A DNA stretch of 64,000 bases, from positions 1,550,001 to 1,614,000 of the forward strand of contig BQFW01000004.1 in the NCBI GenBank assembly GCA_020891255.1, in the 5' to 3' direction. The stretch comes from Entomortierella parvispora E1425 (taxonomy: Eukaryota; Fungi; Mortierellomycota). The notes under the pieces were generated by a model. That model was not told where the DNA came from. It searched no databases and worked only from the letters and a program-made list of their open reading frames with translations. Position numbers and translations under genes: made by a program. Below, in pieces: positions 996 through 22,271 of this stretch. The number at the start of each line of letters is the position of its first letter. Position 1 is the first letter of the stretch.

Positions 996-1128
996 ACATC
1001 AAAAGAGAATTAAAAGAACCAAGCCCTATATCCATTTCACTTTCTTGACTTTCGTTCAGGAGTTGCTTTATTGTATGCAATTGCAACTGAATGCGATAAT
1101 GTACATGCTGTAAGCCAAAAACAAGTAT

Positions 1129-4100
1129 TTACAAAAAGAATGGGTCATCATTCTGTATATCAAGGTCAAACCCTTGCTCCTCAAACCAGTACAAGACGTC
1201 ACTCTTGGCCTGGTAAAGGGACTCTTCTGACATCCGGATGACTTTGAGGGGTGCAATTCGAGGTAACCACAGATTATTTTTAACATCAGATTGATCGTTG
1301 GTACCCATTGAGTCGCCATGTCCGCCGTCCTCCTCTTCCTCTTCCTCCTTTTCTCCTTCCACTCCATCAATCCGTCCATCTTCCTTACTCTCATCCCCGG
1401 CATCCTGGTCATTTTTGGATGACATATCGTCTAACACAACGCCTTCTGGAAATTCCAGACCGCGACCAAAGTGTTGTCCGATAAACTCAAGTTCCTCATC
1501 CCTGAAGGAAAGCCCTCTTGACATTGTTACATCCCAAACTTCAAGATTCTTTTGGAGGCCGGGGACAAGGAGATCCAAACCGTCCTGTAGCCGGATCCGA
1601 AAGTTCAGTGTTGCCATATTCAAGTGTCGCAGTCCCGAGAGCCGACCAAGTCGGTAGTAAAACGAGCGCAGATATGCCAGGTTTTCAGGGTTGTGGAACA
1701 AGCAGACGTGGCGACGGCTTGCAGGTGCTTGCTCATCACCACTACCGTCGCTGTCCTCCGAGTCCGAGCCCAGATCCGATCCCATGTCTGATCCAAAGTC
1801 TGACCCCGATTCCCAGTCCGCGAACGACTCGTGCATCTCCAAATCAGCCGGAGATTGTGGATCCTGAGCCTGGTCTGTTTCTGGTTCTTGTGGATCTTCG
1901 ATATTGTTGGGGTGGCCAGCTTCCTCTGCGTCCTGAGACTCTTGATTCGCCTCTGAAGCAAGTTCAGTTCGCTTGCAAGCTTCCACGGGTATCGAAATCT
2001 GAGGAAAACGTACCAGCTCCTCTCCTTCTTCATGTTGGTCGCGGAGGCTGGTGCTTCGTGAATCAATCTTGAGGGATGTTGAGGAGACATCCAGATGATC
2101 CAGACGAGTACCCACGGCCCAAGGTCCATTGAATAGCTGTATGCTCAGTCCATGACAATGTCGGATGCTCAATTGTTCCAGGCCGACGCAGGATCGTACA
2201 ATGGCACGCATACCACGATTGTGGATATGAGGGCACATTTGTAAGACTAGAGTTCGCAGTCCTCCGGGAACACTGAAGTCACCTTTTATGGTCTTCTCTG
2301 ACCCATCGTAGAGCAAAGCCTCGTCTCTCAACTCCAGTGCTTCTTGAGTATCCTCCACTGACCCAGGGAGAACTTCAGTCACATTTTCGGATGACTTTAG
2401 ATCTTGTTTCTGTCGGAGTCTCCTCTGCTCAGCCTTGACGTGATCTCTCCATGCCTCAGGAACGCCCAATCCAAGTCGTGCCATTCGTTGTCGTTGAACC
2501 TTAGCGAGAATCCAAAGAGCGTGGTCATCTATTGCCTCTGATTCCTCAATGACGATTCGTTGCAGAGCGGTTGCATACTGGAACAGATCCTGGATACCGG
2601 TATTTCGTAGCCCTGAGCAGAAAGATAAATCAATCTCGGTCAAGACGGTATTTGGTTGCAATCCTGAAGGAACTGGGACATCCCTCTTAAAGAACGCCTG
2701 GATCATCTCATCCGTAACATCGCTGTGATGCTGACACGACAGTGACTTCAGATCCCACTGTCCGTTTTGAATGAGGGAGATCAATCCTGCCCCCGTTGTG
2801 TTCGTCATATCAACGTTTATCTTTTCAACACCATATCTCAAAACTCCAAGATCGCTTCCTGTATTATTGCTGGGATGTTGATGGCCTTGCAGATTCTGTT
2901 GGTCCTCTTGGGTCGCTCTTCCCGCTTCAGAGATGGCGGCTTTACGGGTTCCAGTAGCGCACTCGATCAAAAAGGAGTCCGTGATGTCTGTTCCTTTTAA
3001 CATTAGCTGCTTCAGATTGGGGCAGACCTGCATCACCGCGATCAAGTCTTTGTCGGAGGTATCGCTGAGATGCTTCAGCTGTAAACATCGCAATTGTGGA
3101 CCCAGCAAAGCCACGACTGGAAGGCAAGATGTTCCCACTAGGTTGTTGCATCGATTCAGAATCAGAGTCTCAAGGAAGCGAGGAAAAGGTGTCCTGACTC
3201 CTTTGAATTTTGCGGGTCGAGTTGCGCCGCCTCGCCGGTGGACCGGGACTTCCAAGGCAACTGCAGCGACTGCATGAGATCCATTGGGCTGTGATGAACC
3301 GCCGCCTGCCGATGTCATGGGTGCTGAGGTTGCAACTCGTCTCCGAGATCCGAACACTGGTCCCGTTACAAGAGGCTCCTGCTCGGACTCTGTGGCCGTT
3401 GATGGGCCTGGACCAAAACTCTCGTACTGACTGTCGTGATCGTGCTCCGTCTCAGTTTCTGTCAGAGGATTCAATCCGCGGTATTTGTGTGGTCTACGGG
3501 GCTCATCCTGTTCACTTTGCGTTTCTTGGTTGTCCTTGACGTCTGTATCCTGGTCGCTATCGGATCGTTCGGAGTCAGCACTACCGTCAGCACCTTCCAC
3601 TCTACGGGGAGCGCGGCCTCTCTTCCTTTTGCCTTTCTCTTCTCTCCTCTTCCCGATCTCGTAGGGGTCTCCGTGGATCAGAACTCTCAGTGTTTCGACC
3701 GTGACGTTTGTTCCTGTAAGGTCCAGACTCTTCAGCTTGGTACAGTTTTCTGCAATCAACTCGAGATCACCATCCTGAATAGGCATCTCATGCAAGGCCA
3801 AGCTTGAAATGAAACGTCCATAGCGAATAAAGCCCATTCGGAATCCTTTGGCAGACTTCCATATGAAATTGTCGACTCCAGGCCTGGTCAACGAAATGTC
3901 TCGCCAGAGATGCGGTATGCATGCATGGTGAAAGGCACGGGAGACTTGGCACCCGCTGACGAGAGAAGGCGTGTCGAGGTATGAGATTATAAGAGAAAGA
4001 ATCTCCGGAAGCTCCAGTGGCGAGGTTGCTGGGGCTGCATCGCTAGCAGCATCAGCCAGAGGGCTGTCCTTGACCTGGTAGCTGTAGCAACAACAAGGAA

Positions 4101-4152
4101 TCAGCACAGGGCGAGCGTCAACATGTAATGGGCCAACAAGAAGAGACGGCAT
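1129..4152 (-). CDS. F-box / leucine-rich-repeat protein (1007 aa)
   Basis: N-terminal F-box (SPLELPEILSLIISYLDTPSLVSGCQVSRAFH) followed by Cys-containing LRRs (LKSLDLTGT, LETLILNRC, LTEIDLSFC, LRTLVLQMC) with acidic low-complexity inserts. Confidence 0.8.
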   Translation of the reverse strand: MPSLLVGPLHVDARPVLIPCCCYSYQVKDSPLADAASDAAPATSPLELPEILSLIISYLDTPSLVSGCQVSRAFHHACIPHLWRDISLTRPGVDNFIWKSAKGFRMGFIRYGRFISSLALHEMPIQDGDLELIAENCTKLKSLDLTGTNVTVETLRVLIHGDPYEIGKRREEKGKRKRGRAPRRVEGADGSADSERSDSDQDTDVKDNQETQSEQDEPRRPHKYRGLNPLTETETEHDHDSQYESFGPGPSTATESEQEPLVTGPVFGSRRRVATSAPMTSAGGGSSQPNGSHAVAAVALEVPVHRRGGATRPAKFKGVRTPFPRFLETLILNRCNNLVGTSCLPVVALLGPQLRCLQLKHLSDTSDKDLIAVMQVCPNLKQLMLKGTDITDSFLIECATGTRKAAISEAGRATQEDQQNLQGHQHPSNNTGSDLGVLRYGVEKINVDMTNTTGAGLISLIQNGQWDLKSLSCQHHSDVTDEMIQAFFKRDVPVPSGLQPNTVLTEIDLSFCSGLRNTGIQDLFQYATALQRIVIEESEAIDDHALWILAKVQRQRMARLGLGVPEAWRDHVKAEQRRLRQKQDLKSSENVTEVLPGSVEDTQEALELRDEALLYDGSEKTIKGDFSVPGGLRTLVLQMCPHIHNRGMRAIVRSCVGLEQLSIRHCHGLSIQLFNGPWAVGTRLDHLDVSSTSLKIDSRSTSLRDQHEEGEELVRFPQISIPVEACKRTELASEANQESQDAEEAGHPNNIEDPQEPETDQAQDPQSPADLEMHESFADWESGSDFGSDMGSDLGSDSEDSDGSGDEQAPASRRHVCLFHNPENLAYLRSFYYRLGRLSGLRHLNMATLNFRIRLQDGLDLLVPGLQKNLEVWDVTMSRGLSFRDEELEFIGQHFGRGLEFPEGVVLDDMSSKNDQDAGDESKEDGRIDGVEGEKEEEEEEDGGHGDSMGTNDQSDVKNNLWLPRIAPLKVIRMSEESLYQAKSDVLYWFEEQGFDLDIQNDDPFFL

Positions 4153-4346
4153 GGTACCTCTGAGGAGAGCTCATCTGTGGTTGTCAGTTCGATGGATTGG
4201 GCTTTGCAGAGACGTGATTAGACAGACAAGCAAAGAGTGAAGTGGGCGAGAGGAAGAGGGGACAGGACACCAAAAAGAAAGAAAGAAAGAAAAAAAAAAA
4301 GCATGTGTGACGGTCGTAATCAAAAGTAAAGTTTAATACAGTCGCC

Positions 4347-5045
4347 TCAGGGCTGCACCTGCACCTGCAACTGTTCCAATCCTGCCCGGATCCTCTGCGG
4401 GACCGGCACTGGCCGCCGGCTTTCATTGTTCACAAAGACGTGGCAAAAGTGCCCTGTCGCCGCAGCGTCGCCTTGGACCTGACTCGGCTCAAACTCTGAT
4501 GCGTCGAATGTCTTGCCCGTTGCAACAGACGAAGCAGCCTTGGAAAAGACGCCAGCCGAGGCTGGTGATGCCCCTGCACGACCCGTCGAAGCAGACCCGT
4601 CCTTTGCTAGCTTCTTAAAAATACCCACCTGGTACACAACGCTGGATTTGCCAAGCTTAATCACGGCCAAGCGGGCCTCGATCATGTCTGGGAACGACAG
4701 GGAGCTGAAATATTGGCAACCAGATTCGGCTACAACACCAATGGCGCTCTCCTTTGATTGCTCCAAAGGGTTGAGACCGGTCTCCTGGATCAAGAACGTG
4801 TTGATAACGGTGTCAAAGAGAGCGTAGTAGTGCGCATTGTTGAGGTGCCCATATTGATCGTTATCAGCCCACCGTGACTGGATGTCGAGAGCGTAGGGAT
4901 AGAAGGCACGGTCCTTGTTGGTGACTTTATATGATGACGACGAAGACGAGGACGTAAAGTTACGGGTAAGGGTCAACGTCGAAACGCGTGTGGAGGTCGT
5001 TCTCAGATGAGAAGAGATTTGAGCAATTCTGTGGATGGGGGCCAT
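4347..5045 (-). CDS. Hotdog-fold acyl-CoA thioesterase (4HBT/YbgC-like) with a predicted PTS2 peroxisomal signal
   Basis: Motif RWADNDQYGHLNNAHYYALFD and C-terminal GHFCHVFVNNESRRPVPVP. The likely start is the ATG at 5045 (MAPIHRIAQISSHL). Confidence 0.85.
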   Translation of the reverse strand: MAPIHRIAQISSHLRTTSTRVSTLTLTRNFTSSSSSSSYKVTNKDRAFYPYALDIQSRWADNDQYGHLNNAHYYALFDTVINTFLIQETGLNPLEQSKESAIGVVAESGCQYFSSLSFPDMIEARLAVIKLGKSSVVYQVGIFKKLAKDGSASTGRAGASPASAGVFSKAASSVATGKTFDASEFEPSQVQGDAAATGHFCHVFVNNESRRPVPVPQRIRAGLEQLQVQVQP

Positions 5046-6600
5046 GATGTTCTTGTTGCAAAGGTCGGTTGTCAGCTTCCTGCAGTGGATGAGGGAATGC
5101 ATGCGTCGACTTCATGCAGGCTGGACGCGAGCCGTCGGCGGTCGTGTGCAATTAATAACGATCTCTAATTGACAAACATGGCGACGCGTCTGATTGGCCG
5201 GAGCACGAGTGACTGCGAGAGATCCTTGATGTGGAGTCATGATTGCGAGGTCGGCGTCCCTCTTGAGGTCTGTCCCGATCGTCCTCACCTCTACACTCGC
5301 GACCCTTGGTTCGACAAGACAGGCGCTTCAATCACTCTTGACCCCGCACTCCCGTAGCCAATCCTCGCAGGCAAACCATGTTTTCGGTATCGTTTGCTTT
5401 TCGTTGTCGCTTTGGGCAAACAACCTTGCGCTTGTTTGATTTGGTTGGGACAAAGATTCCACAGAGACAGAGACAGAGACAGAGACAGGGAAAGAAACAA
5501 GGCGGGAGTGAGCTCCTGTCTCTTGCTTCCCCTCATTCGCACATGATAATGGAGGGGTTCATGAGGACAGAGGGCGAAGTCCGCGCGCATGGCCGTGAAC
5601 AGTCGCCTTCTCAATTTGTCACGGAAATAGTCTCTCCTCCCTCCCCCCCCTCGCATCGACCATTTTCATTTCTCCTCGTCGTTGCCATTGCCCGAGACCT
5701 AAAAGAACTAAACCAAACCGTGGAGCAGACTTTGAAGGCCTCTGTCAGGGGCCAAAGTCTTTCCAGCCGTTATCCTGTTATCTTTTCACTGGCGATAAGG
5801 GCAAAGACCCCTTTGTCCATTCTGTCTCTTTCTTTTTTCTTTCTTTCCTTCACCACCATCCCCCTTTCTCCATAATCTTTGTGCATCCACCCCACGCCCT
5901 CCCCGCTGCAGCCACTGCCGCACAATCGTTTCTTGCCCACAGACACAGACACAAGCACAAACACACAAACACCCTCCAGGAGTTCTAAAGCACATGCCAT
6001 TTTCACTCCCGCAACTCTCACCCTCTCCACCACCATTCTTTTCGCCAGTCTTCAAACTTTTGTTGTTTCCACTCTTTTCTTCTTGTTCACTTCCTTGACC
6101 ATCCTCTGTCTCCTCAACCACTACTTCAACCCTCTCGTTTCGGTGTCGAGAATACCTCCTTGTTTTTTCTTCTTCGACCAGCCAAAAGATCGCCTCCACC
6201 CTGGTTCACAATCGCGTCCCTCCTATCCAAACTGCCGATCCCTCTTTCACCCGCGCGGCAACACAACACAACCAGAAGCTGCAGTAAGTAAGCAAGTGGC
6301 TTCATCCCCTGCGTCTCCAAATCCCATCGGCAGCTGTGGCCTGTGTGATCTCATGATCGCGATAACAGAGCCAGTGACCTGTTGAACCTAACGATGGATC
6401 GGGCGAAATTCAGACAGCAATCGCTCGGGCCGATTATTATTTTTCGTTGTTCTTCTCGGTCGCACACGACTTTTTTTTTTTTTGGTCCTTGGACACAAAC
6501 AATGATGCTCCTACCTATCCCATGTTAGAAATTCTTATCGTCGTTACTCTTCCTTTCTTTTTCTTGCTTTCCATCAGCAGTCAGGAACCATCAACAGAAA

Positions 6601-7683
6601 ATGCTTCAGGACCTGGATTTGAATTCTCGAAAGGGCTGGTCCAAACCTGCGGACGCACTTGGCCTTTCAAACCCTTTAAGTCACCTTCCACAATCACAGC
6701 AAGTCCAGAGGCTTCAAGAGCAGATCGAGCTTCATCGTCAGTTCCAGAGAAGTGCCCAACAGGCCCATGCCAAAAGCAGAAAGAGTCTATCGAAAAGCAG
6801 CAGTGGAAGCGGTAACAGCAGAGGCAGCATTGAACAGGCAAACGGCCAAGGCAACGAGCCTAATACCCGAGACTTTTCAAGTTCTGGCAGTTTTCAACTG
6901 ACCAACGACAACCAAAAGAGTGATAGCGAGCCCAAGCGTTCAAGCAGCTTTGGTGGGTTCAACTCTCGGCCTAGAAGCAGTCAAGGGAACAGCAATGCAC
7001 TTCATCGGCATTCACTTCACTTTGGCAGCGGTGGACGTGTCCAACACATCAACATCCAGAACGATGACGATGACGATAGCTATATGAGCGGCGATGATCC
7101 CGAACAAGATTCGCAGCACCAACAGCAACTCAACCGACTGAGCAGCTCTAACAGCAGCAACAGCAGCAGTATAAGGGGCATGGACATCAAGATGCCTTTC
7201 AACAACAACGATCAAGGCGCTTTTCATCACCATCGAAGCATGTCTCATCCACACCTTACTCAAGGGTTCGCTCCTGGTGGTATCCATGGATTCACGCCGT
7301 TCAGTCCCGAATCGCCCATCTCGCCGTCCTCGCCAGGATCATTTACATCCGATAACAACAGCTTTTCCGGGTTCACTTTGGGGTTGATGAACCAACATGG
7401 CGCAGGAAATAATCAATCCTCTGGGTTCCACAACAATGGAGGGATCGAGTCTTCCTTGGCGTCCCTGGCTGCACTATCTGTTATGTCTTCAGCTCCCTCT
7501 TCCAACTTACCTAATGGACAAGTTCGTCGACCATCCAGTTCAGGGAGCTCATCCAGCAACTTTATGTCTACACAGAACCTCAATGCCGCATACCAAAGCC
7601 AAACTGCTCAAAACCCGCTCTTGCCCCAGCCCAACATGTTTACGTCTGCTCTTGGACAGCAACTTCAGAGGCAACAACAACAG

Positions 7684-7751
<68 letters not shown>

Positions 7752-8583
7752 ACAACAACAGTTCCAGCAGCAACCTCAGCATCAGCATCAGCAGCAACAA
7801 GGTCAGAATGAAAACAACCTGTCGTCTTATCATCAAATGAACTCTGGAGGTCCGTTCTCGTCTTCATTGCCTGTACAGTCAGCACTTTCGTCTTTTAGTC
7901 ATCATCAACAAGAGTATCTTCAGCACAATTATCAGCATCAACATCATAATTCCAACTACCAACCTCAATTCTATGACCACCAATCAGCACCCCAACAACA
8001 ACAACATCAGCAACAGCAACAGCATCACCAGCAACAGCAGCAACAGTCCCAGAAGCACGATTCTCAAGATGAGAGACAACGGTCTAGGAGCAAGAGTGCT
8101 TCATTGGTGATCCCGCCAGCACCACGGGTCATCCCTCCAAGACCTCCACAGACCTCGGCTCCTCGCAAGTACCATGGTCGGCAGTCCCGAAAGGCTCCCC
8201 CGCCAATCACAAATGTAGTCAAGGAGGTTGTTGCTCCGACACGTCGAATGGCCCACATCCTCTCTGAGCAGAAACGGAGAGAAAAAATTAATGGAGGCTT
8301 TGATGAACTGAAAGCAGTGATTCCAGAGTAAGTCTGTTGATGTTCACTCCACGAAAAGACTTGAGAGACGTAAAACAAGGTAAGCTAACATTCTCTTTTT
8401 GCGGCTTGTAGGTGTGCACAAAACACGGACTCGAAAGCATCGATCTTGAGAAAGGCGGTGGATTACATCCTGTTGCTAGAGGACGAGCTTCGAAGATACA
8501 CTGGCGGCTATGAAGGTCAAGAGGATGGAGGCGATGATTCTCAGCAAGGATATGACGATGATGGTGAACATGCGGAGGAGTAA
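6601..8583 (+). CDS. bHLH transcription factor with polyQ tracts; exons 6601-8327 and 8412-8583 (further 5' exon possible)
   Basis: The intron at 8328-8411 joins RRMAHILSEQKRREKINGGFDELKAVIPE to CAQNTDSKASILRKAVDYILLLEDEL, giving a complete bHLH. Stop codon TAA at 8581-8583. Confidence 0.85.
7671..7800 (+). repeat. CAG/CAA polyglutamine tract inside the bHLH gene (second tract about 7993-8046)
   Basis: Mixed CAG/CAA codon run is directly visible. Confidence 0.9.
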
Positions 8584-8894
8584 AGCTGTCAGATGTTGGT
8601 CAAATCGACGTTTTGGTTTCCCAAGATGAAAACGGACGAAACGAAAGAGACCGATCAAAATAAAAACGCGTGTCTTGCACTTGAAATTAAAAAACGGGAA
8701 AGAATCTCGTAGGGACAACAGGAGTGAGCGCACCCCAGGCCTCATCGGGATGCTGAGGAGAGTGACACGGGCCAGTTCATCTATTCATCCATGGCAAATC
8801 TCCGTTCTTTACTCTTTATTCTTTACTACCATCAATCACCACCGCCCATCATCAGCTCGCGCAACAAAAACTAACAAAAAAACCAAAAAACAGA

Positions 8895-9631
8895 GTGGAA
8901 ACGAGATCCCGAGTTTCATCAAGGCGGCGAGTCCTTGTTACCATCTCTGCCATTGTAATCCTTCGATTAACATTTCTGTACAGCCATATCGACCAAAAGG
9001 TCCCTCAGGACTCTTTGGATGCCCAGTCATCGAGGAAAGCAGGCATGCGGGAATGGTCCAGAGCGAAATTATCACTTTTTCGGAAATACCAGCATCCTAT
9101 TCAAGAAAAGTCACTGCTCGCCAAAACCAACCACGTGGCTTTCCAAGAGTTTCATTGCGGGGATTGTCTCCTCCAGATTGTCCTTCAGAGCGACCGAGGT
9201 GTGGAGTTTTGCCATGCAGCGTCTTCCGGGAAGAGCGATAAGGAGCCAGGAGCATCTGAAGACAAAGCCACCACCGGAACAGTCCAGCACAAGCACGGCA
9301 TCGCAGCTGTGCTTCCGAATCCTGCCAGAAACCCTGAGGCGCTGCAAAGGGTTCTTTCAGATCTCTATCGATACAACTATATGATCGGCAGCTGCGATTT
9401 CTCCATTGTAAACCCGGTGAATAACGAGTGGGTAGACTATGAGCTAAACAAGTTTGCAGAGCACGAAAAGTCCAGTGGACCCGTGCCTTTTCGTTGCTTC
9501 AACGACAAATTGAGAACACTGCCTGGGATTCTGTCAAGGCAAAGATGGGTCAATTCTTCAACAGTCGATTCAAGACTCCATGACCTTGGGAACACGAATA
9601 AAACAGCGTTCATTCCTTTTTGCCACCAAAC

Positions 9632-9668
<37 letters not shown>

Positions 9669-10390
9669 CCGACTCTGTACGACATTCTTCAACATCGATG
9701 CGAGGTAGGAGACCTCTCTCTTTCTATCGTTCATCCATCTCTTCCTCTTTCACTCGACCCATATTTTCTGCACCATGCGATGGGGCGTCGCCTTATTTCT
9801 GGTCATGAGCTGTCAGGGGTACCTTAACTCCTGTCGACAAAGCCAGCTTGCGCAAAAATCCTCGAGGAAAAGACTGCGCCAACTCTACCCCTCGGGACAA
9901 AAGAGTGGATTTTGAAGCATGTTCTTGACCCTTCCTTCCTTCTACCACAAACAGACGACTCTAAAGACAATCACCCCCCTTTCGATATGGTGTATACCTG
10001 GGTGAATGGATCTGACCCTACCTGGAGGCTCAGTAGAGATCATCGGTGGCTCGGAATAAGGTCTTTCTCGAGAATGGTGTCGATAAAAAAAAACTGACAG
10101 CGTGGTCCAGCCAACGTTGGCGGGATAACGATGAATTGAGGCACTCAATCAGGTCGACATTTCGATATGGTTCCTCCATCGTCAGAAAGATTCACTTCGT
10201 CACAGCTGATTACCCGGAGAAAGGGGCATTGATCTCGACGAATGGCGCTTCTTCGGACCAACCCTAGGACCCTTCCGACCAAACGTTTCAGGGGATTCAG
10301 ATCCAGACGTAGAACAAGGGCAGGTCCCAGACTGGCTGGATCGATCGGCAGAGTCGCGCAGGAGGGTGGACGATGTACATCACTCCATTC
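8895..10390 (+). pseudogene. Frameshifted, 3'-truncated Stealth-family (hexose/xylosyl-phosphotransferase-like) gene
   Basis: N-terminal membrane anchor. CR1 (FDMVYTWVNGSDPTW) and the two parts of CR2 (RWRDNDELRHSIRS...IHFVTAD and GQVPDWLD...VHHS) fall in three different frames. No CR3/CR4 is seen before the Crinkler gene. Confidence 0.7.
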
Positions 10391-10684
10391 AAGTGAACAG
10401 GGAGGGAAATCAATTGTCAGTAGAGGAAGATGGGAGGAACAAGGGAGGCAGAAGAGAGGCAGAAGAGAGGAAGAAGGGGCAGAAGCGATGCGATGGAGCG
10501 AAAGCTACTGAGATGGAAGAGAAAAGAAAGTAGAGAAGCGGAAACCCCGTTTCCCTGCCCATGCAGGACTGTATGTATTTTTTATTTTATCATTTTATCA
10601 TTTGAGGAAATGCAAGGTACCCACAGAGACAATAGAAAGGGTTTCCTTGAGCGACTTTAATGAAAAAATGACGGAGCAAGATGC

Positions 10685-12847
10685 CTACAGATTGTTTCCG
10701 CCAGAGGGAGACTCATTGGTATTGACGGTTGTTTTGTCGCCATTTGGAGCGGCGATAATGAATCTCGTGCAGTCCTTGTTGTGCATAATGTTCACCACAA
10801 AGACATTGGCAGGGATGTTCAAAAGTGGGACTGGAGTTGAATGACCTTCCAGGTAGAAATTGACGAGATAGACAGGGATATCGTAGAAAACGGCATACTT
10901 CGAAGCCTGTTGGAGATGATCTTTGAAATCGGGCTGGCTAATTGCGTTAACCTTCAGCTCGTATCCAAACAGCTTTTGACCGTTTTCAGTCAACATCAAA
11001 TCGATGCGATCCTTGTTCTTCGCCTTTGCTTCGAACAAACACATCATTGTTCGAGGAAGCAGACCGTTGAGCGCAGAAAAAAGCGCCACTTGAAAGCCAC
11101 ACTCCTGGGGGCCATGCTTGTTGCGCACTAATGGATCGGCGACCGTAGAAGGAGAGATACATTGCAATCCAAGCTTTAGCATGTTGATCGGGTCCCCGAT
11201 TTCTTTCTTCGATAGTCGCTTCTCTGGTTGGGGCCAGACAGCGTCGATGCAGATACGCAGGATAATACCACTCGTGAACCGGACAGTCCTGTCATTGCTA
11301 GAGTCAAGGACACCAATGTCAAGGAGGTATCGGTTGAAATCGTCAGGAGTGAACTCCCAATCCTCCAACTGGTTTTTTGTTAGGTCGCGAACGTGCGATT
11401 GTTGTTCGGTGTTCATTGACTTCAGATTCGTTCTGAGCTTTGTTTGGGTCCCGTTAAGCAAAGAGCCGATATTCGCCTGCAGTAGACTAGCCCAACTGTT
11501 CTCGTCTGGGTGATGCTGCAAGATAAGTTTGAGCAGCACCATGAATGAGGCAGGGTGACCTCCGGACTCATGCACGACCTTGTCTTGAATCTGCCGAGTG
11601 ATGCCATCCGTGTCGCAGTGCATCTTGTACAAGTCAAAGAGTCTACCCATCTCCCTGAGATCGAAGGGTGGCATCCCGGCGAAGACAGCCTTATTAAATG
11701 GCGACTCCATCTTTCCGTCGGCGAGCAAGAGTTCCATAAGTTTAAATGTACCCACGGCGACATAAGACACCGCCGTCTTACTCGAGAGATTTCTGAAAAA
11801 TTTCTTGGCTGCGTTTAAGAGAATCGAGGAACGGAAAACTGATTGGAATTCGTCCACAAGAACGTAATGACGAGGACTTGGAGGGAGTTCTTGGAGCTTA
11901 GCCGTCAGGTCTTCCCAGGATAGCTTCTGACGGAAAACTCGGAGCGACCAGAATCGAGACAGCATGTCCAAAACAGCGACTTCATCTTGAGTGTCACTTG
12001 GGAGACCCAAATCGGATATATCGAAATATACAACTGCAGCCTCGACAGGGTTTTTCTCGAGCTCAGCTTGCATTGCCATCAGAAAAGACGTTTTTCCAGA
12101 TTGGTATGGGCCATGAACAACAAAAGAGTTTCCAGAGCAGATACCTCGGCGAACTTCCTCAAAGAGACTCCGTTCGGTGAACGGGAGCATCAATGAGGGG
12201 CCACTCCACTGCACCGGTCCTGCGGTTGTAATATGCGAGCGGGCTCTCTTTACATTGCGATCATCTAAGGCAAGTATTTGAACGAGTTAAAAGGAGCGAA
12301 ATAGAACATGAGATATTTAAAACAGATTCAAAGGTCAGATATACCACAAAGTCGAGTTCGAGAGAATATCACAGTCTACACAAGAGCGTTTAGTGGAATT
12401 CTCACCTTCGGCAGGCAACCTCTTCAAGGGAATGTAATCGACGGCAGAAGAAGACGGAGCTGGGCATACACTTTCATTATTAGTCACATGACCACAGCAC
12501 CCGCAACAATTAGAGAAAGGCAAAGCTGCATTACCTTCAGAGGGTCCCTGGATAAAGATGTACGTGTTGTCATCAGGGCTTTCAGGAAACACCCGAGAGA
12601 GCAGAGTCTTTGGATTGAACAGCCCGGTCTTGTCGTGGAGAGTATCAATCGTAATGTCAGAGTTTAGCATGTCGTCAGGGATGGAGACGCGCCAGAGGGT
12701 GAGAAATGCCGAGGCAGTGCGGAGTTTCAGCTCGTCGTTGATGGTTTTCTTGAGGTAATCCACCGTCTTTGCTCGGTCGACTTCAACGGAGAATGATGTG
12801 GGCTGTCCATGGAGGAGACACCAGAGAGTCAGGATGCTGTCAGTCAT
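10685..12847 (-). CDS. Crinkler (CRN)-type effector: ubiquitin-like N-terminal domain + AAA+ P-loop NTPase + PD-(D/E)xK nuclease-like C-terminus; 3 exons
   Basis: CRN N-terminus (LTLWCLLHG...FSVEV...TVDYLKKTI...LTLWRVSIP...TYIFIQGP). Walker A GPYQSGKT, Walker B VLVDEFQ, C-terminal RIDLMLTE...FGYELKV. Two GT-AG introns join the ORFs in frame. Confidence 0.85.
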
Positions 12848-13373
12848 AGTGTCAAACGAGAGTAAAATCTGGTGATGGGCAGGAAGAGAGGAGGCGAAAG
12901 CAGGCTACAGTACTGATATTCCGCCTCACATGACTCCATGGGTGGTGCAATGTTCTTATTTGTCCAGGATAGCACACAGTCACTATTTGGAAAATATTTA
13001 TTGTGCTTTGCACCTAAAAAAAAATAAACTTGCAGATATCATGATGATAAAATATATATCAATGAACAGTCACTCCGGTTAACCTAGAAATTTTGTAGCC
13101 TAAATGCACGTGACAACACGGGGCGCGTGAACATGGTCGCAGGATAAATAAAATTTCAGGGTGCGTTTTGGAACCATACTGACAAGGAGTTTCTGCGTGT
13201 AGTTGGAAAAAGCATGGATATGTTCGTATTTTACCTGGCATTCGTTTATTTGTAGTATACTTACGAACTTTTTACTCATTCAGAAAGGGTAAAAAGATGA
13301 GAAACAGCTATTCGGACCGCAGTATTTAAACTGCAACGTGCATGTTGCTTCTGAAACATCACCCCACATCCCA

Positions 13374-14530
13374 ATGACCTTTTCAGACGATATTCGCTGG
13401 TGCGCCATTAAGCTCTACAATATAATGGACCTGCCAAGGTCTGCTGTGGCAGTGTCGCTAGGCATTTCGCAATACACGATCACGAAATGGTCTCGTAAGT
13501 CAGCGTTGTTGAGTCGCGTCGCCTTCGCGTTTTTTTTTCTTATTCTTTTTTTTTAGGGGGGGTGTTTTTTTTTGGACATGGACAGGTCATTTCAACAACA
13601 GAGGGAACGTTCACATTGAACATACGCGCAAAAACTCTTCTCGATGGCCACCAGATGTGTTGACTTTCGTCGAGTCATATACCAAACACCATCCTTGCTT
13701 CTTCCTTGAGGAGCTACAAGAGGAGCTTAGACCTGAATTCCAGATCTGCAGAATACATCAGTCTCCACAATTTGCCGTGCTTTACGAAATGATCTGAATC
13801 TCTCGAGAAAAAAGTTGCAGAAACGAGCACGCGAGTCAAACCCACAGGAAATCGAGTGGTTTCGACAAAATATGAAGGAACTGTACCTCTTTCCAGAGCA
13901 GCTTGTGTTTATTGATTTATTGATGAGACGAGCAAGGACGGACGAGCGGCTTTGAGGTCGTACGCCTATTCCACAGTCAATACGCCAACTATTGTAAATA
14001 TTCCTTTTTCACGGGGGGTTCGTGTCTCTGCACTGGCTGCTTTTAACTACAGAGGTTTTCTTGCCTGGGAATTCACTACTGGAACATTCACGCGGGAGTC
14101 GTTTCATGATGCATTTGTCGAGAAGATTCTACCCCACCTTCAACCTTACCCTCTACCTAACTCCTTTGTAGTTATAGACAATGCTCGCATTCCTATGTAT
14201 AGCGAATTCCGGGAAGCAATTGAGAGTAGGAGGGCATTTCTCGTTTTTCTTCCTCCTTATTCTCCCCAATTGAACCCAATTGAGGTTGGTTTCTCTCTAA
14301 CCAAACGCTTCATTGAAAAGAATGCAAATCTTGTTTATGCCAAGGCACCGGAAATCGTTCTAGACCTTGCATTCAAGGCATGTGCAAAAACAAAACCTAT
14401 AGCCATCAATTTGTTTTCGCACTGTGGCTATGACGCCGATGGCCTGAAGGAGAATTTTTTGGACTGGAGCATAGACTTTATTTATACTTGGTCCAGCAAT
14501 AAACGTGTCAATCAAAATCTACACGATTGA
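13374..14530 (+). mobile_element. Inactivated IS630-Tc1-mariner (DD34E) transposase with one intron (13495-13585)
   Basis: N-terminal HTH (AVAVSLGISQYTITKWSR). Triad: FIDETSKDGR (disrupted), VVIDNAR, and YSPQLNPIE with 34 residues between D and E. There is a 1-nt deletion near 13740 and an 8-bp duplication at 13908-13923. No terminal inverted repeats were found. Confidence 0.85.
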
Positions 14531-14859
14531 TATCTTCCATATTCTCTAGCGGGCGAGGGAGAGCGGCCTGTTGTAGATGGACAAGGCCATTCAAGCCATG
14601 CTATGAGAGGTTAAGAGTCGTCCGTAGGCTCTCCACATCCACAAGAAGAGATAAGTCCTCTGGCTTTAATCGAATCCGTTTGAATTGAGCTCCATCTGTT
14701 TTTTCTTGAGTCCATCACCGTCTATCTTCCTGCGCTATTTGTGAACCAAGTGCTGTGCTTGAACGAAAGTGGCGGTTGTTGGGATCTCTAAAGGCTCCTC
14801 TGGATCAGGCAATCGAGCATATTGGGCAGGTCTCTGCGTAAACAAAATCTTTGTAATGG

Positions 14860-15400
14860 ATCCTAGAGGTTGTATCTGTCCATTCTCAACTGTCTATTAT
14901 ATCCTCTGAACCGCTGCCGCTTTCCGTGATGCTGTTGCTCGCTGGATTGTCGATCCTGAACCACCGCTGTTTCCTGAGGCACGAGTTTCGGGGTAAGTCA
15001 AATAAGCGAACATATGGACAACAATGTAAACTTACTCCATGCTTCCGCTCCATGCGCCATGCTCTTTCAGTAGCTTCTTCATAGTTGTCCTCCTCCAAGA
15101 TCTGGAAGAGATTAGCCGGGGAGTGTTTGGACAGTTTGACATTTGGTTTGGCATCGGCCGGTCAGCGCACACCAGGTGGGCGAGTTGGACTCTCGAATGT
15201 GCGCACAAATTTGATGGTAGGAATCTCACATTCATTTGTGCTGCCATGGTGGCGGGTCAGATAAATCGCCGATTTTCCGATTGTGAACAGCAGGAGAGGG
15301 TAGCTTCCGAAGATTCAATTGAATGGTGATGTTCTCTGGAGGACCATCTGATTCGACATCTCTGCCGAGTCTCGGCTAATTCCACGTGACAATGCGAATA
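14860..15400 (-). pseudogene. Possible degenerate spliced gene relic of unknown family
   Basis: A canonical GTAAGT...CTCAG 62-nt intron at 15035-14974 joins two short open stretches (EEDNYEEATERAWRMERKHG / ETAVVQDRQ). There are stops upstream and no recognisable domain. Confidence 0.25.
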
Positions 15401-15490
15401 CGTGAAGGATGCGAATAGATGATTGGCCAGCAGGTAAACTCGCCAGAGAGCCACGAACCGCGGTCGCGCGTCTCTTTCCTCTCTTCGCCC

Positions 15491-15640
15491 ACCTCAACAT
15501 CCTCTCTGCGCCCCTAACATCCCCTCTGCACCCTAACATCCTTTCTGCACCCTAACATCCCCTCTGCGCCCTAACATCCTTCCTGCACCCCTAACATCCT
15601 CTCGGCATTCTAACATCCTCTCCATACCCGTCCCTAATCT
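15491..15640. repeat. Tandem array of about 7 copies of a 19-20 bp unit, consensus CCCTAACATCCYYTCTGCR
   Basis: Units start at about 15491, 15511, 15531, 15550, 15569, 15588 and 15608. The array ends about 30 bp before the Fanzor ATG. Confidence 0.9.
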
Positions 15641-15669
15641 CCAAGTTTATGGACATTGGCTAAGAAGCA

Positions 15670-18600
15670 ATGTCGAGCAGCCAAGATTCCATGGACATGG
15701 ACATGGAGATTCACTTGCTGGATGTTTCTGGCGCCTCTTCGAAAAAGGTACTGGATGCCTCTTACTTTGGACTGTCTGCTCTTATCGTCAGCGAGCCCAC
15801 ACAGTACTCATGTTCCCCTTTTCAGACGACAATTTCGTTCATCGATGATGATGATTTTGTAGAGGAGGCAAATAGCCGATTGTCCGAGCAGACTCAAGAG
15901 GGAGCACTGTTGTTGCAGCAACGCGTGGACTTTCTCTTACGTGATCAAAGCAACGCTCTTCCAGGGGCGGAAAATGTTCAAAAGACTCTGAAGGTCCTTC
16001 AACAGCGTTTTGGGCTCGTCATCGACGAGTGCAATAAGACCCTCTCCGCCCTTGTTGCTGACGTTATGAACCGCACCCGACAAACTGCTTTTGGCTTCAA
16101 AGACTCCGCTGCCGATGACTTTATCAGCCTGACGCCTTCAACGCTCCTTATGCGCAGGCTCGCTCATCTTTTGCAAGTCAAGATCGTTGTCGTCTCCACG
16201 CGCGCCTCTACTCTTGTCATAGAGCCATTTCTCGCGCCTATCGTCGCACTAGTGCACGTCGCTGATTCCTTTGAACATATGCGGACCTACTGCCCACTAG
16301 TTGTCTCAAATGTTGCGCCGCAGGTAATCCAATCGCTACTGCCATCGGTCTCTACGCCATCAATCCTTGCACCAGAAACCTCCGCTCCATCAGTCTCCCC
16401 GCTATCCGTATTTGTGTCCCCGGTTGTCGCACCACCAGTCACCGCCCTGTCAGCCGGTCTACCGTCGACGCAAGGAACACCACTTGCAAAGTATTGTCCT
16501 GGAGCAAGACACCAAACCTACAGAAAAGACAAGATTGGATTTGATCTTGAGGATGCAGAAAGGTGCTTCCTCGGAAAGTGGTAAGTATTTACTGGTATAG
16601 GGAAATGAACCTATTGAACGATTCCCAGGCCCCTAACATCATATTTGTCATGCATATAGTACATGGCACTTGAGGAAAGTGGTGAAAGGCGGTGTTGAGG
16701 TGGCCGTCAAAAAAATTGATGACCGGAAGACCAGCAAGAGAAAAAAGAAAGTCGATGATGCAGATATAATGGAAGCCTCCCGAGCCAGCCTGCTGGAAAA
16801 GGAATCTACTCGAACCCGATTACCACAGAATGTTCTTCAAGACGCAATTAGAGATTTGGAGCAAAATCTGAGAAGACCACAAGGCAGCATATCAGTCAAG
16901 GACTTTGTGGACAAACTTGACGATCGACAGTTGGAGATCTTCAAAGTGTTTGTAAATGACAACTTCGAGGTGTTTTGGCGTGACGCTGTCGAAAGGAAGG
17001 AGAAATGCAGCGCCAACGAGGTCGAGCCGAGAATGAAAGAGGACGACCTAGACAAGGAGACCCTGATTCGTGTGTGCGATCTGCCTATAAAGAGGATCCT
17101 ACGCAAAGAGTTTGACGCCGATACGAAGGAAGCAATCATCGATCTACTCGGTGAGAGTCAGACGCTTCTATCGGACCACATGGAAGAGGTGCAGGCGGCA
17201 TGTATGAAGGCACATGTGGAGGTAAGCTCTGTGACGAACGGTTTTGTTTTCAATATCACGATCAATCTCTTGCTAACATTTTGAGCATTGTTTCCACTAC
17301 AGGTATTTAGGGGCTGTTTGAGTGACGACTGGGAGGATGTAGATATCACAGGCATTCTACCTGCCGGCTTCCAGATCCGCGATCCTAAACTTCAGAAAGA
17401 TCCCGTGGTCAGGGTTGCCAAGGTCTCTCACGACCTCCTGAAGAAAATCACAAAGTCCGAGGACAAGAACGCCGACGTGGTGCCTGATCTACGCGATCTT
17501 TTCAGCCAGAACTTCTTGGGTTTCCTCGCCAAGAAGCTTCTTCCTCCAGACAGGGACTCGGAGCCGGCAGAGAAAAAGCGAAAGACGGAGAAGGAGAACA
17601 ATCACGCAGATTGGACAACGTTGGTCGAGTGTATCCAAAAGACAGCCAGTGATGACGACAACTTCCGAGAAAACGCCGAATGTCCAGCAGGATTATCGCA
17701 GACACTGAACACTCTGCTGAGAACGGCTGCAACCGACATTGCCAATATCTGGAACGGAAATATCTACGGCGATATAAAAAGGGCAGTGGTTCGATATCTC
17801 GTGAGAATTCACTTGCGACCCCTTGGCGAAGAGCGATACCGTCAAAACAAAAAGAAATGGGCTGAAAAAAAAATGCACAGTAAGGCCGCTCGAAAGCCCA
17901 GAAATCGGGTGGAGTCAAGAAGAAGGAAAAAACTTTTCTCTTTATTGGATCAGTTGGATCGGACCGTTCGCAAATGCACCAATGAGTGGTCTGGATCAAC
18001 TTTGATTCTCACGGATCCGACGGACAATGAACCATTGTATTCGCGTGTCGACCGTGTCCAAAGATTGCTCCGTCTCATCAACATAGCCAGCACACAGTCT
18101 CAGGGCTCTACCGATGATGTCGATCACCAGGAGGTTATGTTGGGTGACGATGGCGACTATGACGATGAGGAGATGGATGAGGACGACGGTTTCCGAGAGG
18201 CTCTGGAGGAAGAGGCCAAAGAGGAGGAGGTGAAAGGGGGTAGTGAGAATGCGACCTCTGACCCTTGCCATGCAGCGGCCGCTGAAAAAGGTAAGGTCAT
18301 ACCAATCCCCGACATTGTGTATTTAAACTATGTGGTGTCTGACTTGTACATGATTCCTGTTTTAGAGTTAATGCGGAAAGCGGAGCCAACCTCGAAGCAC
18401 CTCCGCGGTTTGGAAACAGTGATCTGCAAATTACTTGATATCGGCGAGTTGTCGGGGTTGGTCACAAAGGATATTGTACGACAACATCTCTTCGACAGCC
18501 ACACGTTTAAGGAGAACGAGGTCGATGCAGCGGTGAAAATCATCAATGCACTTAGACCCTTTACACCAAAGCCCACATCAGGCACCATCCCTCGACATGT

Positions 18601-21135
18601 CCTAGCGACAGGGCCGTTTGCTTACTTGGCGAATCATCTACTGCATGCGATGGGGTTTGGCGATTTTACGAGGAAGCTCTATCCGATATCGTCTGCAGGA
18701 AAACTTCATCCACTCCCATTGGGATCAACAGGGATTCGGGAGGCGCTTTGTTCATCAAAGAAGGAGCATTTTGATGTTTTCGATGCCGAAGGAACCTTGT
18801 GTTCAACTCAGGCACTTGGAGTAAAAAACGCACCCGTCATATTCAGCGCCTTCTTCGATATGAGTGTTATCCATTCCATCTGCCAAAAATACGGGCTTGT
18901 ATTTGCTGATCGGTAAGAGGGAATGTGCCAAGAGTGAATGACATTGTATTCGAACATTACCAAGAACATGACCATAACACATAACATTTCACTTTGTGCA
19001 CGACAGGCTTCTGTTTGTCGACAAAAACACTGTACGAATTATGGGACATGGGATTCGAAAAGATGCCCCAAAGAACCTGTTCAAGGAAAAGAGGCTTAAG
19101 ACGAAGAAATCGAAAAAGCAGCGGGAGCCTTCTTACAACCAACTGAGGCAGCAGGAACTAGAAAAGGAGGGAATGACGAAGCCACAGGCAAAAAAGATCG
19201 CAGACGACCTTACCGATACTATCAAAGTAAAGGAAAAGGCCCTTCAAGGACGAAACAGAAAAGCAGCTAATCTTGAGAAGCAACTCAAGACCCTGAAGTC
19301 CAATTTTCAGGATGCTCGAGTATCGGTGACCGACCAATTTAAGACCAACATGCAGAAAATGCGTAATGATTTTCATGATGTTCAACGTGAAATATTGCGC
19401 ATGCGGGCGGAAATCAAAGACCTACGACAAAAGAAGTACGATCATAACAAATACTACTCCTCCACAACATCCTCGTCGTCATCGGCCTCTTCAGCACCTG
19501 CCAGCTCCCCTGCCAGCTCGTCTTCCGCGGTCCCTGCCGGTTCTTCCTCCTCGGCCCCTGTCAATTCATCCTCCTCTGTTCCTGCCGGCCCATTCTCCTC
19601 AAATCCCACAATCCGTCGACTTGGTTGCCTCGACAAGGCAGAGTCGATAAATATCAAGGGGTTGGTGGCAGAAATTGAGGACAATAACTTGGATCCCACC
19701 AATAGACAGATGGTATTGATGCCAGGAGGCACGGATCCAGGGGCACACGTCCTCTTCAACACTGTCCCCGTTCCCGAGAGCACCCTCATCTCTATGAAGA
19801 ACAGGTTTGATGTCTTGGCGGGTATTGAACCTGAGCCGCCCGACTATGTTCCTGCTGCTCTTCAGCAGATGAGGTTTCCCGCGGCACATCAGACCAAAGC
19901 GTCAAATATCCGACATCATGGAGGGTTGACTAGACAGTCCCAAGTACGATCAAAGATGGTCACCGAAACGACAATCCCAGGGATGGCCGGGCCGGAGACG
20001 ATATCCGAAGTATACACCAAGCTTGCTGATACTTCCATCACACGAGCAAGCACCTCACATGCCATTGAGGAGGCCCAGGAGCTGCGACGAAGGGTACGGA
20101 AAGACCTTCGAATATTCGAAAACAGCAAGAAGATGCAGAATCTCCGACACTACAAAGAACTACAACTAAGGCGCGCTTATGATCGTATTGCGGCGAAGGA
20201 GAGGAAAGCGTTCAGCCGACAGGCCAACAGTAAGTTGACAGAAAATGAAAAGGGGCTAGCCAAATGTCACAGAGCTGTAGATTGATTGGATTTTTTTTTC
20301 TTCGCCCGTCTAGTTACTGCAGATGCATCCTCGCCACCATCATCATTGCAGTCTCCGCTAATATCTTCTTTGCTGATAACGGCCCCGCCCCGACTTCAGA
20401 CCAACGGATTTTGCCTCAAGTGTGGTATACATCACCGACCTGAACCTACGCTAGATCGAACAAGCCCGGAGAGGCCACGGATGTCCCTCCAACACCTCGA
20501 AACTTGCCCAAAGTCGAGACCAGTTGTGATTCCGCTCATGCTACACGGTGATGCAGGTATGGGTGTAGGGTCACGATTGAAGGGGCACTCGAAAATGGGG
20601 GGGAATAAGGTGCCGGAGAGGCACATGAGGTACACCCCAGTCGCGAAGACCCCCGAGCACAAGTCGTCACAAACTTGTCCATTTTGTTTCCAGTTGGTCC
20701 GTTTAGCGCGAGCACGGAGAAAGAAGGATGGGGAGACGAGATTGGTTCGTGTCCACGGTGCTATCGAATGCACCAACCCTGACTGCGAATCGTACAAGGT
20801 GGGATACACCCAACGAGGACGCGACACAAATGCCGCGGTCAACATTGCATTGGCGGGCTATGTTCTCGTCACATCGGACCCAGAGGACCGAGCCACGCTG
20901 CCACCCTTTGACCCAAAGCGACCCACCTGGTCGCTTTCTTCCAACACCAGATCGACTTCGACTGGGGAACCATCACAGTCCTCATGCACCGAAGCAGGTG
21001 CCATGCAGGAATTGAGTCTCAGCTCAAATTATGTAAGTATTCTAAGCTCAAATGCATTGCTGCTCACATCAAATCAAAATTGGCCACAGAATAACTAATA
21101 TTTTTCTTTGTACTTTTTCTCGAAAGGCACAATAA
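15670..21135 (+). CDS. Fanzor (eukaryotic TnpB-derived RNA-guided RuvC endonuclease), giant spliced form of about 1,652 aa; predicted exons 15670-16580, 16660-17221, 17303-18290, 18366-18912, 19007-20229, 20314-21032, 21127-21135
   Basis: RuvC-I GGTDPG (D at 19734), RuvC-II TPEHKSSQTCPFC (E at 20655), Zn ribbon CPFC...CTNPDC, and RuvC-III RDTNAAVNI (D at 20823). All six GT-AG introns keep the frame, and the exon total of 4959 nt is 1653 codons. Intron 3 is in-frame and the last intron is less certain; the unspliced stop is at 21098. Confidence 0.85.
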
Positions 21136-21260: not shown

Positions 21261-22271
21261 TCGGCTTGTGGATCAGATGGACCCCGACGCATATGAGTAC
21301 ATTCCTTCAACCCGACCGTGGATATTGAACATTGGGTTCTGTCTGGGCGAAGGATTTTTCAGCATGCACGACTATGAATCAAAAACAACTAATCTGGATT
21401 TTCTGAACGAGGAAGGGAGCGAGGGTCTTCAACCGATTGGCCTTTCAAGAGTTCCACTGCGGCGATTGTCTCCTCCAGATTGCCCTCAACAACGACCGAG
21501 GCGTTGAATTCTATCTAGAGTGTATAGAGGATCGCCTTTATGAGATATGCGGACCCGATCATAACAAAGAAAAAGACAGCAAAGTCGACGAAAACGACGA
21601 CGAGACCAATGACGATGGGGAAGGCGAAAACAATACGGACAACAATCCTGGTATAGGCATTGCCCCTCCCCCCCATCGTCTGGTGAAACGCGCGCCCCCA
21701 AAAGGGTATTTCCGTCAGCGCACAAAGCCCTTACCGCGCTTGAAAGCTCAGCCGGGAGACGAAGAGCCCCCAAAGGTAGACTAGGAAGAGGAAAGGATGA
21801 ACTTGGAGAGGATCAAAAACAGATTTAGCCACACACCAGGGACTACTGCTATTCTACCAAGGGATGCACCGGAAACCTACCACCAGTTCTTTCCTAACTT
21901 CTCGTCCTCGTCGTCTTTTACTCCTATACGTCCAAAAGAGGAAGAGCCCACAAGAGTTCTCTCAGATCTCTCGGTATAACTACGTGATCAGGTCAACCCC
22001 ATCCCACTTTAGAGCCTACTTTAACCTCAAGGGTCCCCAGCTTGAGTTCAAGCGCCTGAAAGAGGAATACGAGCAACAGTGGCCCTTCGCGTACCTGTTC
22101 CTGAATAACACCATAGATCCCCCGGAAGATTGGCCTGAATTCAACGAGTCGTTCATGTCTTTCCTGGGTCAGCGGTTCCGCATACCAGGCCCTTGGGAAG
22201 AGCGAACTGAAGACGATGCCCTGGAAGGAGAAGAGGTCCTACGACCCCTGGATGAAAACAACAAGACATAG
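21190..22271 (+). pseudogene. Frameshifted paralog of the N-terminal part of the 8.9-kb Stealth-type gene
   Basis: AFQEFHCGDCLLQIALNNDRGVEF matches AFQEFHCGDCLLQIVLQSDRGVEF, and RVLS(D/Q)..RYNYVI matches RVLSDLYRYNYMI. The homology is split over several frames. There is no start or membrane anchor and no Stealth CR motifs. Confidence 0.6.

Follow-up and report, generated by a model that had tools for sequence, protein, structure and literature searches.

A probable giant Fanzor1-type nuclease gene as cargo of an 8.1-kb DDE_3 transposon in Entomortierella parvispora

When a row of open reading frames (ORFs) can be read as one spliced gene for an unusually large nuclease, one has to ask whether the parts belong together, what the product is likely to do, and whether the gene serves its host or a mobile element. 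These questions are raised by EMPS_03070 of the soil fungus Entomortierella parvispora E1425 (GCA_020891255.1), which lies at 15670-21135 (+) of the window, as we call the 64,000 nucleotides (nt) of contig BQFW01000004.1 (positions 1,550,001 to 1,614,000) analysed here. The GenBank label of its product, GJJ70720.1, is 'hypothetical protein' (1,626 amino acids, aa).

Our answer, which we hold to be likely, is that the locus contains an intact giant Fanzor1-type nuclease gene (1,626-1,652 aa), the cargo of an 8.1-kb DDE_3 transposon. A Fanzor1-type core, recognised by its fold, catalytic motifs and transposon setting, makes up the last ~800 residues, and the first ~790 residues are a conserved extension belonging to the same protein. 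By analogy with its characterised relatives, the protein is probably RNA-guided and a cutter of DNA.

Gene structure and nuclease core

The five ORFs (15670-16584, 16670-17284, 17288-18916, 18996-20285 and 20286-21098, all on the + strand) fuse in frame through canonical GT-AG introns with neither a stop nor a frameshift, as the first-pass annotation had proposed. Joining exons 15670-15747, 15826-16580, 16660-17221, 17303-18290, 18366-18912, 19007-20229, 20314-21032 and 21127-21135 gives a translation identical to GJJ70720.1. If 15748-15825 is retained in frame, the model has six introns and a product of 1,652 aa, in agreement with the six junctions and about 1,650 aa that had been predicted.

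Two sequencing runs from the same sample as the genome, X1 (DNA) and X2, bear on these introns. The X2 contigs skip exactly six intervals, 16581-16659 through 21033-21126, with GT..AG ends (18291-18365 by way of loose ends), and read depth is present in every bin over the gene; the X1 contigs, in contrast, skip none of the six, and all four assembled genomic copies retain them. Every exon-exon junction downstream of exon 1 is thereby observed spliced (at the joint of 20229 to 20314 the shorter side measures 188 nt), and the path from the 5' exons through to the RuvC exons, which the first-pass annotation had left to RNA data, can be followed in X2. The segment 15748-15825 is retained in the sole X2 contig spanning it, which derives from a 94%-identical paralogue. 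A stranded RNA-seq library of the same strain (DRA013164) was used for AUGUSTUS hints in the genome paper (PMC8759367), and X2 behaves like that library. The intron calls gain indirect support from insertions and deletions among the element copies described below, since those of a length not divisible by three fall inside five predicted introns (at 16588, 17225, 18973-18979, 20291 and 21075). The gene is thus transcribed, as known at the level of the element family rather than of this copy specifically; the locus is absent from four other runs labelled as the same species (X4, X5, X9 and X10).

Some X2 contigs depart from the window sequence. The one over 15626-16292 has an identity of just 94%, yet the highest depth (216), and another, at 16322-16505, is without the 100 nt of 16323-16422 and gains an A after 16505 (net -99 nt), so that it is probably an expressed paralogue whose Pro/Ser linker is shorter by 33 residues. 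One contig begins at 15626 and extends upstream into repeat-like sequence. The tandem array at 15492-15625 is the stretch that varies most among the element copies, and it may be the promoter or 5' untranslated region.

What the gene encodes is best seen from its C-terminal half. All the motifs on which the first-pass annotation had relied for an intact RuvC triad and zinc ribbon (TDPG, PEHKSS, RDTNAA and CxxC/CxxxxC) were located: GGTDPG at 19725-19742, TPEHKSS at 20649-20669 and RGRDTNAAVNI at 20814-20846, with a Cys4 zinc ribbon made of CPFC (20676-20687) and CTNPDC (20769-20786) between RuvC-II and RuvC-III. In 1,626-aa numbering the catalytic triad is D1220 (RuvC-I), E1499 (RuvC-II) and D1555 (RuvC-III); the RuvC-I Asp becomes residue 1246 in the six-intron model, and either position suits the roughly 1,240 residues that had been counted before RuvC-I. 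The additional CLKCGIHH, also picked out earlier as preceding RuvC-II, lies at 20412-20435 and is part of a family-wide CxxC..H..C motif (20412-20435 and 20487-20510) within the RuvC insertion. The triad and the four ribbon cysteines are conserved in relatives from Linnemannia, Mortierella, Gryganskiella, Actinomortierella, Lunasporangiospora and Modicella.

The sole match in a sequence search of the PDB is the Spizellomyces punctatus Fanzor SpuFz1 (8GKH), a weak one (E 0.09-0.1), in which TPEHKSS aligns with the E541 motif, RGRDTNAA with D606, and the two Cys pairs with the zinc ribbon of SpuFz1; E541 and D606 are metal-binding residues of that enzyme (PMC10432273). The predicted structure bears out the earlier assignment to the TnpB/Fanzor type. 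An AlphaFold model of residues 790-1626 (mean pLDDT, a predicted score of the local distance difference test, 73) matches GtFz1 and SpuFz1 with a Foldseek probability of 1.00, and the same Foldseek list includes Cas12f and Cas12 family chains. With VIA-align, the model superposes on SpuFz1 8gkh with Z 13.9 over 251 residues (model 385-799 on chain 362-633), on PpFz1 with Z 12.1 and on CasPhi with Z 11-12. Model residues 2-832 match Mucoromycota proteins named Cas12f1-like TNB, and upstream of RuvC-I the model shows a conserved alpha/beta-plus-helical block followed by a helical hairpin.

Profile searches returned little beyond this. Pfam and NCBIfam on single exons gave just a sub-threshold TNB match and coiled-coil noise, while PDB profile searches gave coiled coils only with alignment A1, nothing meaningful with A2 and SpuFz1 at E 0.1 with A3. 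An XPG/FEN1 domain was detected neither in this protein nor in any of 20 more members of the family scanned whole, and Pfam finds none in the extensions of the 36 members of alignment A2. The scores of language-model feature searches were low (0.53-0.80), with DUF8286 as the sole lead.

The N-terminal extension

One might suspect that so long a protein is a gene-prediction artefact, an N-terminal protein and an ordinary ~800-aa Fanzor having been wrongly merged. We take the extension and the core to be one protein because of a single ORF, colinear homologues in at least six other genera, and the spliced contigs. The ORF at 17288-18916 runs from the helical domain of the extension across an acidic linker and takes in the first ~150 residues of the conserved core block, and therefore the link between helical domain and core requires no splice. 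A HMMER scan with this middle ORF returned 335 cluster representatives, most of which match the block encoded by 18366-18912, a block with nearly invariant residues. Colinear homologues of 1,300-1,900 aa occur in the six or more other genera, and P0017 (1,823 aa), P0038 (1,731 aa) and P0029, P0050 and P0059 (~1,550 aa) are colinear with the whole model. A word-based homologue search with residues 1-790 found three proteins only.

Some points do favour a merger: the long homologues are all computer predictions, short contigs cannot establish a single full-length mRNA, and the first exon is covered by the paralogous contig alone. Set against these are the unspliced passage from helical domain to core, the splicing of all junctions past exon 1 with X2 depth in every bin, an order of parts common to seven genera and to Mucorales entries of AFDB, and the equal dN/dS of both halves (see below). 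We therefore regard a merger as very improbable and continue with a single giant protein.

In the model of residues 1-790 (mean pLDDT 79), an alpha/beta domain (26-197) is followed by a disordered Pro/Ser linker, a helical domain (261-735) and an acidic linker. The helical domain (~475 residues) matches the N-termini of uncharacterised Mucoromycota proteins in AFDB. Among them, A0A168HZD0 (1,154 aa) aligns with the helical domain (E 2e-4) as well as with the core (E 2e-25), and thus the layout of helical domain plus Fanzor extends past the Mortierellaceae. The Mucorales matches span the helical domain alone (~480 residues), whereas the extension of the Mortierellaceae is ~790 residues long with an OTU-like front. 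An exhaustive structural search with the N-terminal model found helical hairpins only; no solved structure resembles the helical domain further.

For the front domain, about half of the top 50 Foldseek matches in the PDB are OTU domains (E 0.9-4.6). OTU proteins in AFDB are matched with probability 0.5-0.9, the ESM Atlas gives a TM-score of 0.48 over residues 74-182, and residues ~73-187 recur as weak OTU matches in all three databases. Cys95 stands at the position of the OTU-enzyme cysteine (IDECN, before a helix), and is found in two of the eight sequences aligned there; the His is variable too, and Pfam OTU has no match in this protein. Compared with the OTU cysteine proteases (deubiquitinases), then, there is a weak likeness of fold without conservation of the catalytic Cys, and if the modelled fold assignment is right, the front domain is probably not a protease.

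The front domain is shared by P0033 (KAG0050570.1, Gryganskiella cystojenkinii, 1,902 aa; hhalign 95%). Residues 282-400 of P0033 form a canonical Pfam OTU cysteine-protease domain (23.6 bits, with DGNC and NHY motifs), placed after the shared front domain and ahead of the helical domain; of the 21 family proteins scanned whole, P0033 is the one to have it. A profile comparison of the front domain with the canonical OTU of P0033 was not significant, and we read the latter as no more than a hint of some connection to ubiquitin.

As for what the extension does, our guess is that it might regulate the protein or bind partners, for example in nuclear import or through contacts to ubiquitin or to chromatin. 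The basic clusters KRKKK, KKRK and RRRKK, judged as sequence, could serve nuclear import. A more specific proposal, which we advance tentatively and consider rather unlikely, is that the front module (OTU-like plus helical) is functional rather than a passive spacer, and connects an RNA-guided nuclease with the cellular machinery for ubiquitin, chromatin or DNA repair.

The transposon, its copies and selection

At 12997-21135 lies an 8,139-bp Tc1/mariner-type (DDE_3) DNA transposon that carries the Fanzor gene as its right-hand cargo; the assembly holds at least four copies of this transposon at different sites. Apart from the window copy, these are L001 (EMPS_02746/02747, 5813-13933), with 99.57% identity over 8,143 columns, L002 (EMPS_10539/10540), 95.8% identical to the window unit, and L006 (EMPS_07617), with 90.8-96.9% identity in three blocks. 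The X1 contigs add at least one further flank past 21135, unlike that of any assembled copy.

The terminal inverted repeats are 9 bp long (TTATTGTGC ... GCACAATAA), and L006 carries TAATTGTGC at the position of the left one. When the element ends were compared across copies, no target-site duplication could be fixed: TA adjoins either end when the termini of the element are taken to be TTGTGC...GCACAA, one further base per side is shared, and L006 differs there.

The transposase at the left of the unit is broken. Its ORF 13952-14530 matches Pfam DDE_3 at E 1.9e-17 with 64 bits, the cut-off being 28.6, and an 8-bp tandem duplication, TTTATTGA, near 13908 splits the FIDETS motif, with a second frame change near 13790. 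We take the ancestral transposase to have been intact, since L002 is without the duplication. The decay of the transposase beside a whole Fanzor frame, described in the first-pass annotation, is thus real for the window copy. Among the four copies this unbroken frame is found in the window only, for frameshifts are present in L001 (+2 nt at 16746, +1 nt at 20729), L002 (-1 nt at 15896, -1 nt at 17865) and L006 (-5 nt at 18249); some of these fall within short homopolymers and, the assembly being Nanopore-based, could be errors of assembly.

Selection was assessed on the E. parvispora copies, where the first-pass annotation had envisaged a comparison across the Mortierellaceae. The ratio of nonsynonymous to synonymous substitution rates (dN/dS) of the window copy is 0.26 against L002 (dS 0.059) and 0.18 against L006 (dS 0.047), with values of 0.19-0.23 in the extension (residues 1-735) and 0.20-0.25 in the core. 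In the copies compared, the extension is therefore under purifying selection as strong as that on the nuclease core. A contrast with a dead transposase, expected to show a dN/dS near 1, was tried and dropped, the transposase fragment giving 0.30-0.57 on few sites; because of these values we make no claim that selection on the Fanzor gene outlived the transposase.

Could the nuclease instead be a domesticated host gene, derived from a transposon but now serving the fungus at a fixed locus? An intact Fanzor frame beside a broken transposase would suit such a history, as would purifying selection on the family. The first-pass annotation had left recent activity and domestication side by side; recent activity fits and domestication does not, because an 8.1-kb unit with fixed ends occupies at least four different sites. 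These copies, with their terminal inverted repeats, lie at unrelated sites with 95.8-99.6% identity, three of them are already frameshifted, the stop codon is the end of the transposon, and other genera hold many divergent copies rather than one ortholog. We give domestication very little credence, and the evidence points to recent mobility of the element.

Three more distant members of the family (L003-L005) have no adjacent DDE_3 remnant and no shared end motif, and the transposon type may therefore differ between subfamilies. At L003, the GenBank model EMPS_06960 (P0003, 1,415 aa) halts at an intron, and just downstream, at 10883-11389, RuvC-II, zinc ribbon and RuvC-III are present intact but outside the annotation; this subfamily is thus longer than annotated.

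The coordinates of the gene and element are collected in Table 1.

Table 1. Features of the element and its nuclease gene in window coordinates
Feature	Position	Strand	Evidence or remark
Whole repeated unit, 8,139 bp	12997-21135	+	Copies share end bases; flanks unrelated
Left terminal inverted repeat TTATTGTGC	12998-13006	+	Reverse complement of the unit's last 9 bases
Broken DDE_3 transposase, helix-turn-helix then catalytic part in shifted frames	13338-14530	+	Pfam DDE_3
Seven tandem copies of a 19-20-nt unit CCCTAACATCCYYTCTG	15492-15625	+	Directly upstream of the Fanzor start codon
Exon 1	15670-16580	+	N-terminal alpha/beta domain (15745-16338), then Pro/Ser-rich linker
Extra GenBank intron, 78 nt, in frame	15748-15825	+	Annotation of GJJ70720.1
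Intron, 79 nt, GT..AG	16581-16659	+	Skipped in one X2 contig; 1-nt deletion in L002 at 16588
Exon	16660-17221	+	Start of helical domain; basic cluster KRKKK
Intron, 81 nt, GT..AG, CTAAC branch-like motif	17222-17302	+	Skipped in two X2 contigs; 8-nt insertion in L002
Exon	17303-18290	+	Remainder of helical domain (domain 16528-18112), acidic linker
Intron, 75 nt, in frame, GT..AG	18291-18365	+	X2 loose ends at 18290 and 18364 hold far-side sequence
Exon	18366-18912	+	Opens the family's most conserved block, start of the Fanzor core (18458-19136)
Intron, 94 nt, GT..AG	18913-19006	+	Skipped in one X2 contig; 7-nt deletion in L002 and L006
Exon	19007-20229	+	Coiled-coil hairpin (19173-19469), Ser-rich linker, RuvC-I GGTDPG (19725-19742)
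Intron, 84 nt, GT..AG	20230-20313	+	977-nt X2 contig joins 20229 to 20314; 1-nt deletion in L006 at 20291
Exon	20314-21032	+	CxxC..H..C motif, Gly-rich loop, RuvC-II, Cys4 ribbon, RuvC-III
Candidate omega-RNA scaffold region (putative)	20900-21135	+	RNA fold, conservation between copies
Last intron, 94 nt, GT..AG	21033-21126	+	Skipped in one X2 contig; a second contig ends with last-exon letters
Last exon, Ala-Gln-stop, doubling as right terminal inverted repeat GCACAATAA	21127-21135	+	Stop codon is the transposon's final 3 bases

Several further features of the copies and their surroundings should be recorded. L006 carries at 6907-7318 a 413-bp insertion with inverted ends of ~27 nt (ACAGTGCACG...) that resembles a miniature transposon, and L002 carries at 997-6368 an insertion of ~5.4 kb with a hAT dimerisation-domain gene. 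Directly downstream of the sister copy in L001, a called gene (14104-19290, 1,625 aa) has no tblastn similarity to the Fanzor protein at E 1e-5. In the window, a gene at 10685-12847 (-), the start of which is ~150 bp away from the transposon's left end, encodes an N-terminal Crinkler effector domain (Pfam E 1e-15) and, after it, an AAA/TniB-like ATPase. An 81-nt direct repeat (80% identity) is present at 9128-9208 and 21430-21510, and 21437-22271 resembles ORFs at 8675-9827, so that the Crinkler gene and the transposon stand between two paralogous gene fragments.

Candidate omega-RNA, mechanism and significance

The 3' end of the element is where one would look for a guide RNA. The last 236 nt (20900-21135) fold at -61.6 kcal/mol against -45.3 +/- 4.0 for shuffled sequences (z -4.1), better than all 200 shuffles, and belong to the stretches best preserved between copies, at 2 differences per 250 nt, although they code for a disordered, unconserved tail; no Rfam family matches them. 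An X2 contig runs 21 nt past the last joint and would extend ~12 nt into the flank of the window copy. An ORF that continues to the last base, the 3' fold and the 3' conservation are consistent with an omega-RNA, without being proof of one.

We propose a mechanism because of the analogy to SpuFz1, GtFz1, PpFz1 and TnpB. The protein would bind an omega-RNA that arises by transcription of the element's 3' end, with its scaffold within about 20900-21135 and its guide read from the flank past 21135, and would cut matching double-stranded DNA beside a short transposon-adjacent motif. Such cutting could help the element to persist or spread, for example if element-free or excised sites were cut and repair copied the element back.

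A number of observations weigh against the overall reading and should be kept in mind. At the level of sequence, similarity to known Fanzors is marginal (PDB E about 0.1), and Pfam PF07282 (Cas12f1-like_TNB) scores 21.0 bits (E 3.8e-4), under its gathering cut-off of 26.3; this profile matches none of 30 relatives in alignment A1, a shortfall that concerns the detection threshold and not a structural feature. The expected likeness to TnpB/Fanzor profiles and structures was thus found in the structure and in the motif alignment to SpuFz1, and not in the Pfam TNB gathering score. The VIA-align superpositions on solved Fanzors cover the RuvC/TNB half, the WED/REC half giving no direct alignment, and those of the front domain on OTU are weak (Z 3.2-4.9). 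Run X2 is labelled 'DNA?', an automatic guess at run type, and its contigs show the majority alleles of the family, for which reason they are not assignable to the window copy as against its near-identical sisters; variants specific to the window copy lie at 18472, 19659, 19685 and 19857. The window copy and L001 differ by just four substitutions within the gene, and the intactness of the former may reflect youth rather than selection on it. Finally, RNA binding, guidance and cleavage rest on analogy with characterised Fanzor1 and TnpB.

There is also the likeliest of the rival readings, namely that the Fanzor fold is kept while the main activity is not RNA-guided cutting; the protein could be a nuclease that nicks or needs no guide, or it could be a platform for DNA binding with its function in the large extension. 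One half of the protein has no relation to known Fanzor parts, an extra conserved CxxC..H..C motif lies inside the RuvC domain, and the omega-RNA is here a candidate region. On the other side, a complete D-E-D triad and Cys4 ribbon are conserved across genera, the ORF reaches the element end, as it does where a guide RNA overlaps the 3' end of an ORF, and the 3' 236 nt fold better than any of the shuffles. On balance we think a different activity unlikely, and keep to a Fanzor1-type nuclease that is probably guided by RNA.

Compared with the solved Fanzor1 proteins (SpuFz1 8GKH, PpFz1 and GtFz1), the protein is alike in the RuvC-I/II/III triad, the Cys4 ribbon and the fold (Z 12-14), in the Gly-rich loop before RuvC-II and the introns of its gene, and in its position at the right end of a eukaryotic DNA transposon with an ORF that runs to the element end. 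It differs in its length (1,626-1,652 aa, ~2.5x the usual size), its N-terminal extension of ~790 residues, the long coiled-coil hairpin and Ser-rich linker before RuvC-I, the extra CxxC..H..C motif in the RuvC insertion, and a sequence similarity under Pfam thresholds. Most Fz1 are 600-700 aa long, the ~100-aa RuvC insertion of PpFz1 being a notable exception (PMC11423790), and the first-pass estimate of about twice the size of characterised Fanzors was, if anything, low. With bacterial TnpB (IS200/IS605, e.g., ISDra2) and Cas12f/Cas12j the fold of RuvC and zinc ribbon is held in common; unlike TnpB, however, this gene is eukaryotic, spliced and four times the size, and its element is a DDE cut-and-paste transposon, not a member of IS200/605. 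The literature searched contained no paper that describes this extension and none that joins Fanzor with Mortierella, although the census of Saito et al. includes at least one Mortierella protein.

Characterised Fanzors are compact and are studied as small genome editors, whereas this lineage is widespread, fungal and extended. It lies under Pfam thresholds, and domain-based surveys may therefore undercount it. An intact copy with exact ends and splice sites provides a defined construct for testing what function the extension adds. For the family, the finding means that a Fanzor1 core has long carried a conserved extension; if the proposed coupling were true, it might steer the repair of the nuclease's own break or control the stability of the nuclease, and the coupling module would make this eukaryotic RNA-guided nuclease the representative of a new class, regulated or multifunctional, that is common to the Mucoromycota.

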